Shown: positions 26,457 to 34,181 of the stretch, in pieces | Numbering within the stretch: the stretch's first letter is position 1 | Layout of the letters: each line of letters opens with the position of its first letter | Assembly: GCA_002269645.1 (NCBI GenBank) | Contig: NIVC01000686.1 | Coordinates: forward strand, 81,968-145,967 | Reading direction: 5' to 3' | Length of the DNA stretch: 64,000 bases | Origin: Macrostomum lignano | Taxonomy: Eukaryota | Notes under the pieces: generated by a model | The model's input: the letters and a program-made list of their open reading frames with translations, nothing else | The model's database searches: none | What the model was told of the DNA's origin: nothing | Program-made: the position numbers and the translations under genes

Positions 26457-26864
26457 CCGAACAGCACTTGGTGTTGTCTTGGCTAGCAGGAGCATCAAGA
26501 CAAAAAAGGCTACAAAGATGTTCATTCCCAGTAGCATTTTTGCGGGGGATTCCGGTGGCAGCCAGAAGATGACCCAGGTGAGGCAGGACAACAGAATGCA
26601 GGGCAGCACAAGAATTGACAGGTAGAAAGCCGGATTACGTCGCATCCGAATCTTGTAAACCAGGGTCTGATAGATTCTGGTGTGTTTGGTGCCGTTCCGG
26701 TCAAGCGTGGTGATTTTCTTGCACTTCATCCGGGATTTTAGCTGGCGTTCTCGCTGGGACGGCCGCACAGTGAATTCTTCCTGACCGTCGGTGATCCACT
26801 CGTGGCTTCTAATGTAGTTCGTGAAGTCCACGTAGGGATTTGGCTCGTATTTGTACACTTCGTA
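26457..26864 (-). CDS. nAChR-like Cys-loop channel exon 2 (loops F and C, M1, M2)
   Basis: cccacag|TACGAA to CGG|gtgagt, 408 nt, phase 0-0; [58 protein letters not shown]. Confidence 0.95.
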
Positions 26865-28404
26865 CTGTGGGAGCGAAAGGGAAGGGCATCTGGCTTTAAC
26901 TATGGGTTAGATGACGAGGCATTTGTCTATTCTGGGATGGGTATTTTCAATTCGACTCTCGAATCTGGGTAATTTTAACTATAAAGTGAAGTACCCAGTA
27001 CTGCGGGGAGAGTGAAAGACAGTATTTGTCTTTAACCATATTTATGCATTTAGCTAATGTAAAAATCACCTATCTGAGCACGGATTCCTTTATTCTTTAG
27101 GTTTGGGTGGCTACCTCTGATTCTACGATGCATTGCTACACAATATGACGATGTACGAGTACCATAGAGCCGTAAACAAATCCAAATGGTCTGTAGCAAA
27201 TAAAAAGTGAACAACCAAAAATCGAGAGCTCCCTGCGCAAAGCTCGTCATAAGGACCTTGGAGACCACTGCCAGAAAAAATATAGATGAGCACAAAGTGT
27301 CTGGACAGGGAGGTAAGCGGCAATTCAACTCTGGAACTCTATTTTGATTGCTCCGCCGACTTTACCAACCGAATGTGTAGTGCTGCAACAGGACCCGGGC
27401 AAGCGGCGAAATGAAAGATGGAAGCGTTCGCAAGTCTCTGGTTAGGGTAGAAAATTGAGCTAGATTGGAACTGGTTCGTTTCCCCCGTTTCATTTCTCCA
27501 GCCACTCAAGTCCGGATGCTGCGGCACTTCACGGCCCAACTAACTCTGTGGCCAGTTGATTTAATAAGCCTGGACCAGAGTTGACTGCAGTTCCGAGGAA
27601 AACACGTCGCAATTAGGATAATGAAGATGGCTAGAAAGTGACCGATAGCATGTCTGTACTGTACTATTTTGTTTGCTTGCTGTCGCGGCCCAAGCGAATA
27701 GATTGGAGGAGCTTACTGGCACGGATTAGCCCGACATGACGGAGGCTATTGCGAGTATCCGTCAGGGAAGACTGACTGCCACCGGGGAAGGATAGTCAGT
27801 GAAGTAGAGGCCGAGCAAGAGAGATAGATATTGCGCATATACAGCCAGCTCTGATAAACTTATTGGCACACTGCGGGCTAGGACCATGGAATAGCTTCTT
27901 CTAGTTCGCTTTAGCTAGAGCTGCCAGCCTCTCACTCTGCATTTCGCTCTTATTCTCGTCTCTTGAGCTAGTTGAGTCCATTCTAGGTCAGACTGATTAG
28001 GAGGCAAATTCAATTCTGAGCCCCTCTCCTCTGTTCTCATTCTCCTGTCCCTAATTTATCTCTCTCACTCTCGCCGTTACCCCACTGAAGGGGGCGGCGA
28101 CAGACATTTTGCCGAGAGCTGATCTACAAGACATCGAAGGGACGGAGGGCTGTACAGGCGCCAGTCAGCTGTTCCTCCCCCGACTTTCCCTGTCACAATG
28201 CATATCTATCAGAACTCCGGTTATCTACTGTGCCCAGAGTTTGAGCACGTGTGACACGGACAGAAAGCTACATACTAGGAGCCACGGCGCTCAGAAGGTC
28301 GACAGGCGGAAACTGGAACCGACAGAAAGTATTTTGTAAAATAGAAAGAAGACTATACCACTATATATATAAATATATAATAGAAAAATAGACGAAAACA
28401 AAGA

Positions 28405-28748
28405 CAGACAGACACATACATACATACATATATACATACATACATACATACATACGTACATACATACATACATACATACATACATACATACATACATACA
28501 TACATACAGACAGACAGACAGACAGACAGACAGACAGACAGACAGACAGACAGACAGACAGACAGACAGACAGACAGACAGACAGACAGACAGACAGACA
28601 GACAGACAGACAGACAGACAGACAGACAGACAGACAGACAGACAGACAGACAGACAGACAGACAGACAGACAGACAGACAGACAGACAGACAGACAGACA
28701 GACAGAGACAGACAGACAGACAGACAGACAGACAGACAGACAGACAGA
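28405..28748. repeat. (TACA)n/(GACA)n microsatellite
   Basis: Read directly. Confidence 0.97.
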
Positions 28749-29569
28749 CTGAAACCAAGATAGACAGAAAACGGAAACAAGAAAATGGAAGAGGACAGCA
28801 TAGATTTTAGCGCTCCGAAAAGGCAAAGCGAGACTGACATTCCAGTAAAGCTGGGAGAGCTTCGGAGACCCTAAGCAAACTGGATCTCGAACCAAATTTG
28901 ATGAAGCCTCTCTCCTCTCGAACTCAGATCATCCGCGTGTTGCCGGCTCGATCTCCTCCAATATTGGGAAAGAGAGAGTGGGGATCAGAAACAGGAATAG
29001 GGGAGAGGCAGAGCGCCAGGCGGTCGCATTAAAACAAGTTCCCGTTCTCCTTCCTTTCCACCTCGCAGCTACCCGCACAACAAGGATTCTGAAATCCCCG
29101 AGTGCGCCATAAAATCCCGATCGCCGACGCTCCCTTCGGCTGGGGGTGTTATCGATTTCCTTCCAGCCCGGTCTCAAAATCGGAAAAGGGGATAACAACG
29201 CGCTCATTTTATAGCGAGGCGAATCCTCTCTCTGTTCGGTCCAACGCCTGACCTGTACAGGCGGGTGGGTTTTAAAATTTCATAATTCATATCCTCATTA
29301 AACCAAGCTAGCTCTGTCGGGTTTCCCATTATTCGAAACATGCTTCTTATCATTGATATGCACTTGGAGTCCTAGGAGCCAATCGTTAGATCACTAGCTA
29401 GCAGGAATCTTATAAAAGCCTTCATCTCTCTGTCTCACTGAACTGAGGTTCAGCCCTAATGCTCTAATTAAGATAAGCGAATCCGCATCAGGAAGTATCA
29501 CGCTGATGCTGCTGCCCGCTCACAGTGACTGGGATCAGAGGCGGCAGGAAAGGGGACGCGGGCGGAGAG

Positions 29570-31592: not shown

Positions 31593-31982
31593 TGGATTTT
31601 CTGCCATGCCATTTACAGCAGATTTGTTTTTTGCGAATCCTTTCATCATCGCAAGCTTTGCCGGCTTTTCCATCTTACTTTTCGTCTTTAATTATGACAG
31701 AGCAGCAGTGAGTGTCCCCTGTTTCTGCTTGTGCAGTCCGAGACTTTTTTACTCGTTCTGTCTTCTTCGCCGCTGGGAAAATCGAAGCGCATGCTAGCTC
31801 GTTAGTAATTAAGGGATCGGTTAGCTGGAGACGCGCCCCGCCCCATAGGCCACCTGCCTGCGGATTTCGTCGATTCTCTCTTGAAATTTCAGCTTGATGC
31901 AACTAAGATAGACGGCATACGGCATGCTGCATTTAAGGTGATTCGTATTTACAAACAAAGTTTGATTACATTTACCTGCAGA

Positions 31983-33435
31983 TACAAGATGAAATGAAGC
32001 TTTCGAAGCGTTGTGGTGTCAAATTTGAAGCAAAACGGGAACTTTAATGACATTGCTGTTATGAGTTTTGATTAAACTAGGACTTTTAGAGCTCTGTGAT
32101 AGATTGGATTCGATTTCTAGGAAATGTAAGAAGGTTTGCTCGATTTCTAGGAATTTATAGACGGACTGGAGTCAATTTCCAGTAGATAAGACAGAATCGA
32201 TTAGATTTCTTGGAATTGAGGTATAATGGGTTAGATTTCTAGGAATTCAGGTATAATGAATTAGATTTCTTGGAATTGAGGTAGAATGGATTAGATTTCT
32301 AGGAATTGAGGTATAATGGATTAGATTTCTTGGAATTGAGGTAGAATGGATTAGATTTCTTGGAATTGAGGTAGAATGGATTAGATTTCTAGAAATTGAG
32401 GTATAATGGATTAGATTTCTTAGAATTGAGGTAGAATGGGTAAGATTTCTAGGAATTAAGGTATAATGGATTAGATTTCTTGGAATTGAGGTATAATGGA
32501 TTAGATTTCTAGAAATTGAGGTAGAATGGATTAGATTTCTTAGAATTGAGGTAGAATGGGTTAGATTTCTAGGAATTACGGTATAATGGATTAGATTTCT
32601 AGGAATTGAGGTATAATGGATTAGATTTCTTGGAATTGAGGTAGAATGGATTAGATTTCTTGGAATTGAGGTAGAATGGATTAGATTTCTAGAAATTGAG
32701 GTATAATGGATTAGATTTCTTGGAATTGAGGTAGAATGGATTAGATTTCTTAGAATTGAGGTAGAATGGGTTAGATTTCTAGGAATTAAGGTATAATGGA
32801 TTAGATTTCTTGGAATTGAGGTATAAAGGATTAGATTTCTTGGAATTGAGGTATATTGGATTAGAGTTCTAGGAATTGATGTATAATGGATTCAATTTCT
32901 TGGAATTGAAGTATAATGGATTCAATTTCTTGGAATTGAAGTATAATGGATTAAATTTCTGGGAATTGCGGTACAATAATTTTAATTTTTATTGCGGTAC
33001 AAGATAAAATGAAGCTTTCGAAGCGTTGTGGTGTCAAATTTGAAGCAAAAAGGAAACTTTAATGACATTGCTGTTATGAGTTTTGATTAAACTAGGAATT
33101 TTAGAGCTCTGTGATAGACTGGATTCGATTTCTATAATGTAAGAAGGTTTTGCTCGATTTCTAGGAATTTATAGACGGACTGGAGTCAATTTCCAGTAGA
33201 TAAGACAGAATCGATTAGATTTCTAGGAATTGAGGTAGAATGGATTAGATTTCTTGGAATTAAGGTATAATGGACTAGAGGTCTAGGAATTGAGGTGTAA
33301 TGGATTAGATTTCATGGAATTGAGGTAGAATGGATTAGAGTTCTTAGAATTGAGGTATAATGGATTAGATTTCTTGGAATTGAGGTAGAATAGGTTAGAT
33401 TTCTAGGAATTGCGGTAGAATGGGTTAGACTTCTA
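31983..33435. repeat. 30-bp minisatellite (ggattagatttcttggaattgaggtataat)n within a partial duplication offset by about 1015 bp
   Basis: A unique block of about 230 bp starts at 31983 and again at 32998, each followed by the 30-bp array. Confidence 0.92.
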
Positions 33436-33530
33436 AGGCAGAGGAAGGCAGAGGAAGTGTTGTCGAAGAATGGAGGTCAGCTGCAGACTTCTTAGAAAAC
33501 AATGAAACGCATCGGTCGGTCTCCCCTCAC

Positions 33531-34181
33531 CTCAAACGGATACCAAGTGAGATTGATCTTAGTCAGATCGTAAGTTCTCGATCCGAACTCCAGCGAGCAA
33601 GTCTGCGTATCGAACGGGAAGTACTTGATCTCGATCTCGCAGGTGCTCTTGAACAGGCTCTGTGGCACCCACAGCACGCTTCCATCCTGATAGACCACAA
33701 TCCGAGCCGTGCGCTTCTCCTTTAGTCGGGTGTCCGCAAAGTTGAACAGCCGGATATCCGGAGTCCACACGTCCTCCGGGTTGAGTCGCAGCTGGGTGAT
33801 GTTCTCGAAGCTTTTCCACTCGCGAGCCTCCTCGGTGCCGTTCCAGGTCCAGTTCAGCAGCGGGTCCTGCCAGGCGTAGCGCATCCAGCAGTTGGTGCGC
33901 AGGAACTGCCGGTTTTCGTCCAGGTCGAGGATCTGGATGATCGCCAGCCCGAACTGGATGGTCATCAGGTCGGAGGCCTTGACCACGGGCCTCCCAACGA
34001 TGCCGGTCTCATTATACCGATGGAGCAGCGTCTTGATCAGCTTCTTCTCCAGCGACCGGTTCCGCATGCTGGAGCGGCCGTAGACCGCTGGCTGGACGGT
34101 GGTAGTGTCGGATTCGGCGGCGAGAATGGCGAAGGCTACGGCGAGCGCCGCTGCGACGCCGCCCAGTTGTGGCGGCCGCAT
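33531..34181 (-). CDS. nAChR-like Cys-loop channel exon 1 (signal peptide and most of the extracellular domain)
   Basis: Hydrophobic signal-like N-terminus, WTPDI, Cys-loop CEIEIKYFPFDTQTC, donor GAG|gtgagg; 651 nt. The three exons total 1680 nt = 559 aa plus stop. Confidence 0.95.

Follow-up and report, generated by a model that had tools for sequence, protein, structure and literature searches.

The window analyzed here is a stretch of 64,000 nucleotides of Macrostomum lignano (assembly GCA_002269645.1, contig NIVC01000686.1, positions 81,968 to 145,967 of the forward strand), and it contains on its minus strand (34181..25664) a three-exon gene, Mlig011325, for a nicotinic-type pentameric channel subunit of 559 aa. 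This gene probably codes for a non-alpha subunit, that is, a structural or complementary pore-forming component of heteromeric nicotinic-type chloride channels gated by acetylcholine (ACh). On sequence evidence, it belongs to a flatworm-specific clade of subunits similar to ShAR2beta and SmACC-2. With its loss of aromatic residues from the principal face, it is in itself nothing out of the ordinary among non-alpha subunits, and the Arg that it carries at the site of the loop B Trp is unusual, but not unique. The family itself is already known (2007, 2014), and within this picture only the change of the loop B Trp to Arg is specific to the gene. The initial annotation of the stretch had left two options, a structural non-alpha subunit or a chloride channel for a different ligand. 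The first is favored by membership in the clade, by the absence of the vicinal-cysteine motif YxCC, and by the contrast between a variable principal face and an invariant Trp in loop D.

Binding-Site Loops and Pore

The residues on which the argument turns are the following, in window coordinates.

33885..33887, minus strand: Trp99, loop D (NCWMR), complementary face; kept, with Trp in 25/25 clade members
33744..33746, minus strand: Phe146, site of the loop A Tyr (equivalent to Y93); states among 25 clade members: Tyr 16, Phe 5, His 2, Leu 1, Gln 1
33597..33641, minus strand: Cys-loop, C181-C195, with the FPFD motif and 13 residues between the cysteines
33576..33578, minus strand: Arg202, codon AGA, site of the loop B Trp (equivalent to alpha1 W149), in FGSRTYD
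26637..26801, minus strand: extended basic loop C, residues 239-293 (55 aa); helix and coil at 243-261, beta9-beta10 hairpin at 262-293
26721..26723, minus strand: Cys265, the sole, unpaired Cys of loop C; aligned by MAFFT with Tyr or His of the parasite orthologs (about the Y190 position)
26688..26696, minus strand: N274-G-T sequon at the tip of the extended hairpin; N-x-T at a similar place in many parasite orthologs (RRNQT, ERNQT)
26538..26546, minus strand: Pro-Ala-Lys (-2', -1', 0'), anion-selectivity motif at the cytoplasmic mouth of M2, in the linker PPESPAK
26478..26480, minus strand: Lys346, position 20' of M2 (extracellular ring); Glu or Asp in most relatives, Lys also in two M. lignano paralogs and in SmACC-2/ShAR2beta

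The loop B residue was placed by HMMER, which aligns FGSRTYD with FGSWTYD of human alpha4 and FRSWTYD of beta4. The codon AGA is two bases apart from TGG, and a single nonsynonymous change is enough to pass from one to the other (TGG>AGG>AGA). Loop A reads WTPDIRLFNFAD (LFNFAD), relatives having Tyr at the site of Phe146. From EW to RR, loop C has exactly 55 residues, including 15 Lys/Arg, six Asp/Glu, and one Cys (C265), with a net charge of about +9 and no YxCC, whereas in alpha-type relatives it has 34 residues and 4-5 Lys/Arg. The gene therefore lacks the vicinal cysteines by which alpha-type subunits are defined. Its aromatic box also departs from the alpha type, as Phe146, Arg202, and Cys265 (or Lys266) occupy three of the sites and only Tyr282 is retained. 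The initial annotation had read most of this directly from the letters: GSRTYD with an AGA codon two changes away from TGG, LFN instead of LYN in loop A, a 55-residue loop C rich in Arg and Lys with a single Cys and no YxCC, the Trp of NCWMR in loop D, and an intact open reading frame (ORF). Each of these readings is recovered in the 559-aa gene model, and that of loop B at three genomic loci.

In the AlphaFold2 model, loop C is predicted with confidence, ten-residue blocks having mean predicted local distance difference test (pLDDT) scores of 94-97 across residues 201-290. The strands of its hairpin are predicted at 262-271 and 277-293, with the N-G-T sequon at the turn. Cys265 is Cys in 5/5 M. 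lignano paralogs of the Macrostomum subclade, within a loop alignment whose register is uncertain. An intersubunit disulfide between Cys265 and Cys98 was considered and set aside; at position 98, Cys substitutes for the Val or Ile of relatives, and a residue at this place of the fold is expected to face the core.

The Pro-Ala motif has been described for the SmACC and Lymnaea anionic nicotinic channels (PMC4055736). In the window gene, Pro-Ala at -2'/-1' of M2 likewise replaces the Gly-Glu of cationic nicotinic ACh receptors (nAChRs), and the whole of PPESPAKM is the same as in the SmACC-1-like subunits of Schistosoma and in subunits of Lymnaea, Octopus, and Lingula, which form a Pro-Ala(-Lys) group. 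To judge from the motif, M2, which has Lys at 20' besides the Pro-Ala-Lys at -2'/-1'/0', would contribute to an anion-selective pore. On the complementary face, the 'GSVLW' of loop E is identical to that of human beta4.

A Flatworm Clade with a Long Basic Loop C

A long, basic loop C without vicinal cysteines is common, in the alignment, to at least seven paralog groups of M. lignano, and the same features are found in trematode, cestode, and monogenean proteins. The extension consists of two insertions (of ~12 and ~10 residues), which add ~20 residues to the alpha-type loop, with the pattern EW.TDG...Q(I/L)(R/K)S. An exhaustive search of 1.84 billion representative proteins with a profile of the region from loop B to M2 gave only 18 matches at E <= 1e-30, after which the score falls sharply to ordinary YxCC subunits (at least 134 bits for the clade, at most 121 bits for the ordinary subunits). 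All clade members that have a source name are from flatworms. In neighbor-joining trees, which carry neither bootstrap nor maximum-likelihood support, the window gene clusters with ShAR2beta/SmACC-2, apart from the alpha-type ACC subunits. Its sister is an M. lignano paralog that retains the Trp (UniRef A0A1I8HZF7), and its own branch is not elongated. Identity with the parasite members of the clade is ~40-50%.

By this distribution, the long basic loop C is a signature of the clade and not a site rebuilt in this gene; a loop C unique to the gene was accordingly discarded. The initial annotation had proposed that the agonist site of the channel is rebuilt at both places. At loop B, Arg does depart from the family, but the proposal is not supported for loop C, which is clade-wide and present in ShAR2beta/SmACC-2 too. 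It had also suggested counting the paralogs that share GSRTY and the long loop; the loop does extend to the paralog groups, whereas in the databases searched the Trp-to-Arg change of the clade is confined to the Mlig011325 gene. Two UniRef models of the sister paralog (P0093 and P0009) contain ~190 residues that separate loop B from loop C, at the position of intron 1, and that are apparently a retained intron; they were taken out before alignment.

Two of the sequences connect the clade to published subunits. P0216 holds the exact peptide of the SmACC-2 antibody, TDGEAERHIRHEDRVHQLRSV, within its loop C, and it begins with MEKSLIR and ends with VVDLQ, which correspond to both SmACC-2 cloning primers. 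P0366 is GenBank AAX59989 from S. haematobium, named by its depositors 'nicotinic acetylcholine receptor non-alpha subunit precursor ShAR2beta', and has the same loop C features. As cited in PMC6151654, ShAR2beta had been presented as a divergent subunit in 2007 (Bentley et al.). MacDonald et al. (2014) put SmACC-2 among the non-alpha subunits because YxCC is absent (PMC4055736). SmACC-2 lies in peripheral nerve fibers, and RNA interference against it makes schistosome larvae hypermotile (PMC4055736). The alpha-type SmACC-1 is a homomeric ACh-gated chloride channel, and no current was obtained from SmACC-2, whether by itself or together with SmACC-1 that had not yet been codon-optimized (PMC4055736).

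An 1144-aa model of S. haematobium (P0371) seems to be a fusion of the ShAR2beta/SmACC-2 gene with a paralog that keeps the Trp, and the S. mansoni identifiers Smp_142690 and Smp_142700 are consecutive. Together, these observations suggest a tandem pair in schistosomes.

The ShAR2beta/SmACC-2-like clade is flatworm-specific and absent from the hosts. M. lignano is free-living and amenable to transgenesis, and it has an expanded set of clade subunits; hence, it may serve as a convenient and harmless model for the assembly and the non-agonist interfaces of inhibitory nicotinic channels.

Loss of the Loop B Trp

Among 372 nicotinic-type sequences fetched, 317 match the Cys-loop/loop B pattern, and 282 of these carry the loop B Trp, so that its substitution by Arg is a real departure. 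Within the clade, the Trp is kept in 19/26 members, and the tree implies at least four independent losses. The SmACC-2/ShAR2beta group has Met or Leu at the site, a second schistosome paralog has Leu, a protein of the monogenean Cichlidogyrus has Thr, and the window gene has Arg. Arg is found independently at this site in Calicophoron daubneyi P0278, which is in another Pro-Ala-Lys non-alpha clade, and in the cation-type M. lignano P0318; these two rule out that a loop B Arg is unique to the gene among nicotinic-type subunits. There is also a precedent in vertebrate muscle, where PDB chains show Gln in gamma (FQSQTY, FRSQTY) and Tyr in beta1 (FSSYSY).

The other sites of the principal face are also variable. 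The loop A Tyr is found in 16/25 clade members, against 25/25 for the loop D Trp, and the first aromatic of loop C, as placed by MAFFT, is Tyr in 13/26. These variable sites are flanked by invariant residues. Tyr204 is present in 26/26 members, and position 282 is Tyr or Phe in 26/26. The alpha-type outgroups keep all four of the loop A Tyr, loop B Trp, loop C Tyr, and loop D Trp. Judged by this conservation, the loop B Trp is expendable in the clade, and the Trp of loop D, on the complementary face, is constrained. As loop C is shared, the claim that the gene is the strongest candidate for new biology in the window is not supported for that loop, and the loss of the Trp recurs in the clade and in muscle subunits.

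Gene Copies and Selection

The repeat-rich intron of 6.7 kb that separates loop B from loop C was a reason to check whether the Arg or the absence of YxCC might be an artefact, either through a base error at the codon or through a mis-modeled gene with a missed exon. No evidence for this was found, and the explanation is barely credible. The gene has three loci in the NCBI assembly (g1, g2, and g3), and two more models come from an older assembly; all five read FGSRTYD, with AGA in 3/3 genomic copies, on three independent contigs. AGA at three loci and Arg in five database entries rule out a sequencing error. A tblastn search of the whole window with alpha-type and clade proteins matched only the three exons of the gene and revealed no alternative loop C exon. 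This negative result, which covers the 6.7-kb intron 1 and the rest of the window, rules out the missed YxCC exon that the initial annotation had thought of. The same exon-2 loop C is found in every clade member, and the models of the depositors, which have an in-frame 5′ extension before the ATG, look transcript-derived.

Mlig011325 is under purifying selection. The ratio of nonsynonymous to synonymous substitution rates (dN/dS, by the Nei-Gojobori method) is 0.03-0.08 between the three loci, which differ by 9-16 synonymous versus 1-4 nonsynonymous changes. The amino acid differences between copies (A32E, H394P, A428T, and E430D) are all outside the binding loops and the pore. With such strong constraint, and with nonsynonymous differences that are few and spare the binding loops, decay is rejected; a pseudogene is ruled out by the same dN/dS together with the integrity of all coupling elements. 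The length of intron 1 differs between copies, being 6666 bp in the window, 6704 bp in g2, and 10528 bp in g1.

One could still suppose that the Arg is neutral or mildly deleterious, in a redundant and recently multiplied paralog that is losing its function. The existence of at least seven clade paralog groups in M. lignano and of three loci for this gene makes redundancy plausible. However, the low dN/dS, the absence of nonsynonymous differences in the binding loops and the pore, the intact ORF and key elements, and the branch that is not elongated all speak against it, and we regard it as very unlikely. Besides W202R, there are only 15 window-specific substitutions at sites conserved in >=90% of the clade, and these are mostly conservative, which rules out a general degeneration of the protein. 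W202R is the single radical change in an otherwise conservatively evolving protein.

Proposed Role of the Subunit and of Arg202

As a non-alpha subunit, Mlig011325 would provide the complementary face, with Trp99 of loop D and 'GSVLW' of loop E, and ACh would bind at interfaces whose principal face comes from an alpha-type partner. A candidate for this partner is M. lignano Mlig005119 (P0043), which has YPCC, the full aromatic box, and the same Pro-Ala-Lys motif. The principal face of Mlig011325 itself would have no ACh site, because there are no vicinal cysteines and no loop A Tyr, and because a cationic residue occupies the site of the cation-π Trp. Arg202 should repel a quaternary ammonium, and it may itself fill the remaining aromatic pocket; its presence thus probably makes this face unable to bind ACh. 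The extended basic hairpin of loop C, probably glycosylated, would form a clade-wide cover over the non-agonist interface.

Several points weigh against this assignment. No member of the clade, SmACC-2 included, has yielded a current in heterologous expression, so the non-alpha role is itself deduced from the missing YxCC. The neuronal non-alpha subunits beta2 and beta4 retain the loop B Trp; hence, its loss is not a requirement of non-alpha status. In the majority of the parasite members, Tyr/Trp/Tyr/Tyr is intact, and an ACh-binding principal face may thus have been the ancestral state. Finally, W202R, being the sole radical change in a conservative protein, could mean a directed functional change and not a simple relaxation.

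Alternatively, Arg202 might act as a tethered pseudo-agonist. Its guanidinium would fill the residual pocket lined by Phe146, Tyr204, Tyr282, and the loop D Trp of the neighboring subunit, and would hold the interface in a liganded-like state. The subunit would then not be inert but would tune ACh sensitivity, desensitization, or spontaneous opening. Three aromatic side chains round the site are indeed kept (Tyr204, position 282, and the loop D Trp), purifying selection is strong around the Arg codon, and Arg side chains of peptide toxins are able to occupy the aromatic box of nAChRs. A pocket that is self-liganded has, moreover, been documented in the orphan receptor Alpo4 (PMC10338036). The idea is nevertheless structural speculation, and it overlaps with the assignment given above, as the subunit would still be non-alpha and only the active role of the Arg would differ. 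We consider it rather unlikely.

The second option of the initial annotation was a chloride channel for a different, possibly anionic, ligand. In this case, the principal face would have become a site for another ligand, probably anionic or zwitterionic (an amino acid or another acid), and the channel, though derived from nicotinic receptors, would not respond to ACh. A carboxylate, sulfate, or phosphate group would be bound by Arg202 and the basic loop C. A cation stands exactly where the cation-π Trp is expected, no other change at a clade-conserved site is radical, and the Arg is under strong purifying selection at three loci; the net charge of loop C, about +9, points the same way. Nicotinic-like receptors with noncholinergic or unknown ligands are found among the PDB matches (the ACR-23 betaine receptor and the orphan Alpo4). 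Because GABA-A-type (γ-aminobutyric acid) receptors could not be found in flatworms, according to one paper (PMC10728431), an inhibitory amino acid receptor of other origin is conceivable. Yet the basic loop C is older than the Arg and occurs also in members with a full aromatic box, and hence it did not arise as an adaptation linked to Arg202. The Met, Leu, and Thr replacements elsewhere in the clade fit the loss of a site better than the gain of a new one. Furthermore, in the databases searched, this Trp-to-Arg change is limited to a single gene in a single species, and no partner residues that would coordinate a ligand were identified. A principal face turned to another ligand is therefore improbable. 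That Arg202 and the basic loop C together form the site of an anionic or zwitterionic transmitter or metabolite, in a nicotinic-derived chloride channel not gated by ACh, is distinctly improbable; if true, it would place such a channel in a phylum where one paper finds no GABA-A-type receptors (PMC10728431).

Comparison with Known Receptors

The closest known system is ShAR2beta/SmACC-2 (Smp_142690), which is in the same flatworm-only clade as the non-alpha subunit proposed here. Both have a basic loop C of ~54-55 residues without vicinal cysteines and with TDG...Q(I/L)(R/K)S, both have lost the loop B Trp (Met in ShAR2beta/SmACC-2), and both have Lys at 20' of M2 and keep the loop D Trp. The window gene differs in having Arg instead of Met in loop B, Cys instead of Tyr at the Tyr190 site, and Phe instead of Tyr in loop A, as well as PPESPAK before M2, where SmACC-2/ShAR2beta have PPDSAAK. 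As it belongs to a separate, Macrostomum-specific expansion, it is not a one-to-one ortholog of ShAR2beta/SmACC-2.

The alpha-type anionic nicotinic receptors of Lophotrochozoa (SmACC-1 Smp_176310, the Lymnaea subunits, and Mlig005119) share with the window gene the PPESPAKM...GMNIFVAFF pore and the same fold, with 37-42% identity. They differ from it in having YxCC, a loop C of 34 residues, and the full box (Tyr, Trp, Tyr, Tyr), and are thus of the agonist-binding kind; YxCC, the Trp of loop B, and the Tyr of loop A are all absent from the window gene.

Vertebrate muscle non-alpha subunits (beta1, gamma, delta, and epsilon) resemble the window gene in lacking vicinal cysteines, in having a principal face that is not an agonist site, and in the loss of the Trp from loop B; a complementary face for alpha is still provided by gamma, delta, and epsilon. 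In contrast with the window gene, they are selective for cations (Glu ring), their loop C is of ordinary length, and the residue at the Trp site is not basic. They are also distant from it in sequence (E about 1e-38 to 1e-48).

Alvinella Alpo4 (PDB 8bx5) and the cephalopod chemotactile receptors are, like the window gene, lophotrochozoan and derived from nAChRs, with no vicinal disulfide and with altered orthosteric sites. However, Alpo4 keeps all the aromatics, including the loop B Trp, whereas the window gene has the anion motif and groups with the flatworm ACC subunits. The cephalopod matches to the window gene are only alpha-type Pro-Ala-Lys subunits with YxCC (~37% identity), the chemotactile receptors not being among the sequences compared.

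Gene Model and Surroundings

The gene model is made up of the following elements.

33531..34181, minus strand: exon 1, residues 1-217, with the ATG, signal peptide, loops D, A, and E, Cys-loop, and loop B; Neur_chan_LBD; donor GTGAGG
26865..33530, minus strand: intron 1, 6666 bp, with simple and tandem repeats and splice sites
26457..26864, minus strand: exon 2, residues 218-353, with loop F, loop C, M1, the M1-M2 linker, and M2; acceptor CCCACAG, donor GTGAGT
25664..26284, minus strand: exon 3, residues 354-559 and the stop, with M3, the intracellular loop, the MA helix, and M4; Neur_chan_memb; acceptor TTCACAG

All exon junctions are in phase 0 with GT/AG ends, and the model is the same as NCBI models PAA78480, PAA81302, and PAA63366 of M. 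lignano, the product being 100% identical to 'hypothetical protein BOX15_Mlig011325g3/g2'. Pfam identifies Neur_chan_LBD (E = 3e-44) and Neur_chan_memb (E = 4e-32). The Cys-loop reads CEIEIKYFPFDTQTC, and both of its cysteines are invariant in the family alignment. The ORF is unbroken, as are the signal peptide, the Cys-loop, the pre-M1 Arg, the M2-M3 Pro, and the four transmembrane helices. The AlphaFold2 model (mean pLDDT 81) has helices at 295-318, 324-347, 356-386, and 474-535, which account for the four transmembrane helices and the MA helix. The top 60 PDB matches by sequence and the top 50 Foldseek matches are all nAChR subunits, and none is a GABA, glycine, or glutamate-gated chloride channel (GluCl) subunit. 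By sequence, the nearest solved structures are human beta4, alpha4, alpha6, beta2, and alpha7 and the muscle nAChR subunits. A literature search found no paper on Mlig011325.

Repeats lie within the introns at 26325-26452, 28402-28749, 29559-29949, and 32195-33434. Intron 2 contains (CAAC)n, and intron 1 contains an (AGAC)n/(ACAT)n microsatellite, a GA-rich 16-111-bp array, and ~41 copies of a 30-bp unit. Directly upstream of the start of the channel gene, at 34769-35911 and 36604-37000, there are two arrays, one made up of 42 tandem copies of a 27-bp unit (92% matches) and the other a 20-bp array; they coincide with a strong positive GC skew at ~34-40 kb.

On the other side of the channel gene, an ORF on the plus strand (21480-22133) matches the C-terminal part of alpha-tubulin (Pfam Tubulin_C, E = 1.5e-42) and is probably the last exon of a tubulin gene that closely follows the channel gene. 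Copy g1 likewise has a tubulin gene on its downstream side, so this neighborhood is common to copies. Between the two genes, a 207-aa ORF on the minus strand (23787-24410) has no Pfam match of its own. It matches part of a fused UniRef model (P0092) that contains a piggyBac-type transposase domain (DDE_Tnp_1_7) and an integrase zinc domain, and it is therefore probably a transposon remnant. At copy g2, a gene for a nuclear hormone receptor (zf-C4 and Hormone_recep, positions 1-1492 of that locus) is located ~8.5 kb upstream of the channel gene.

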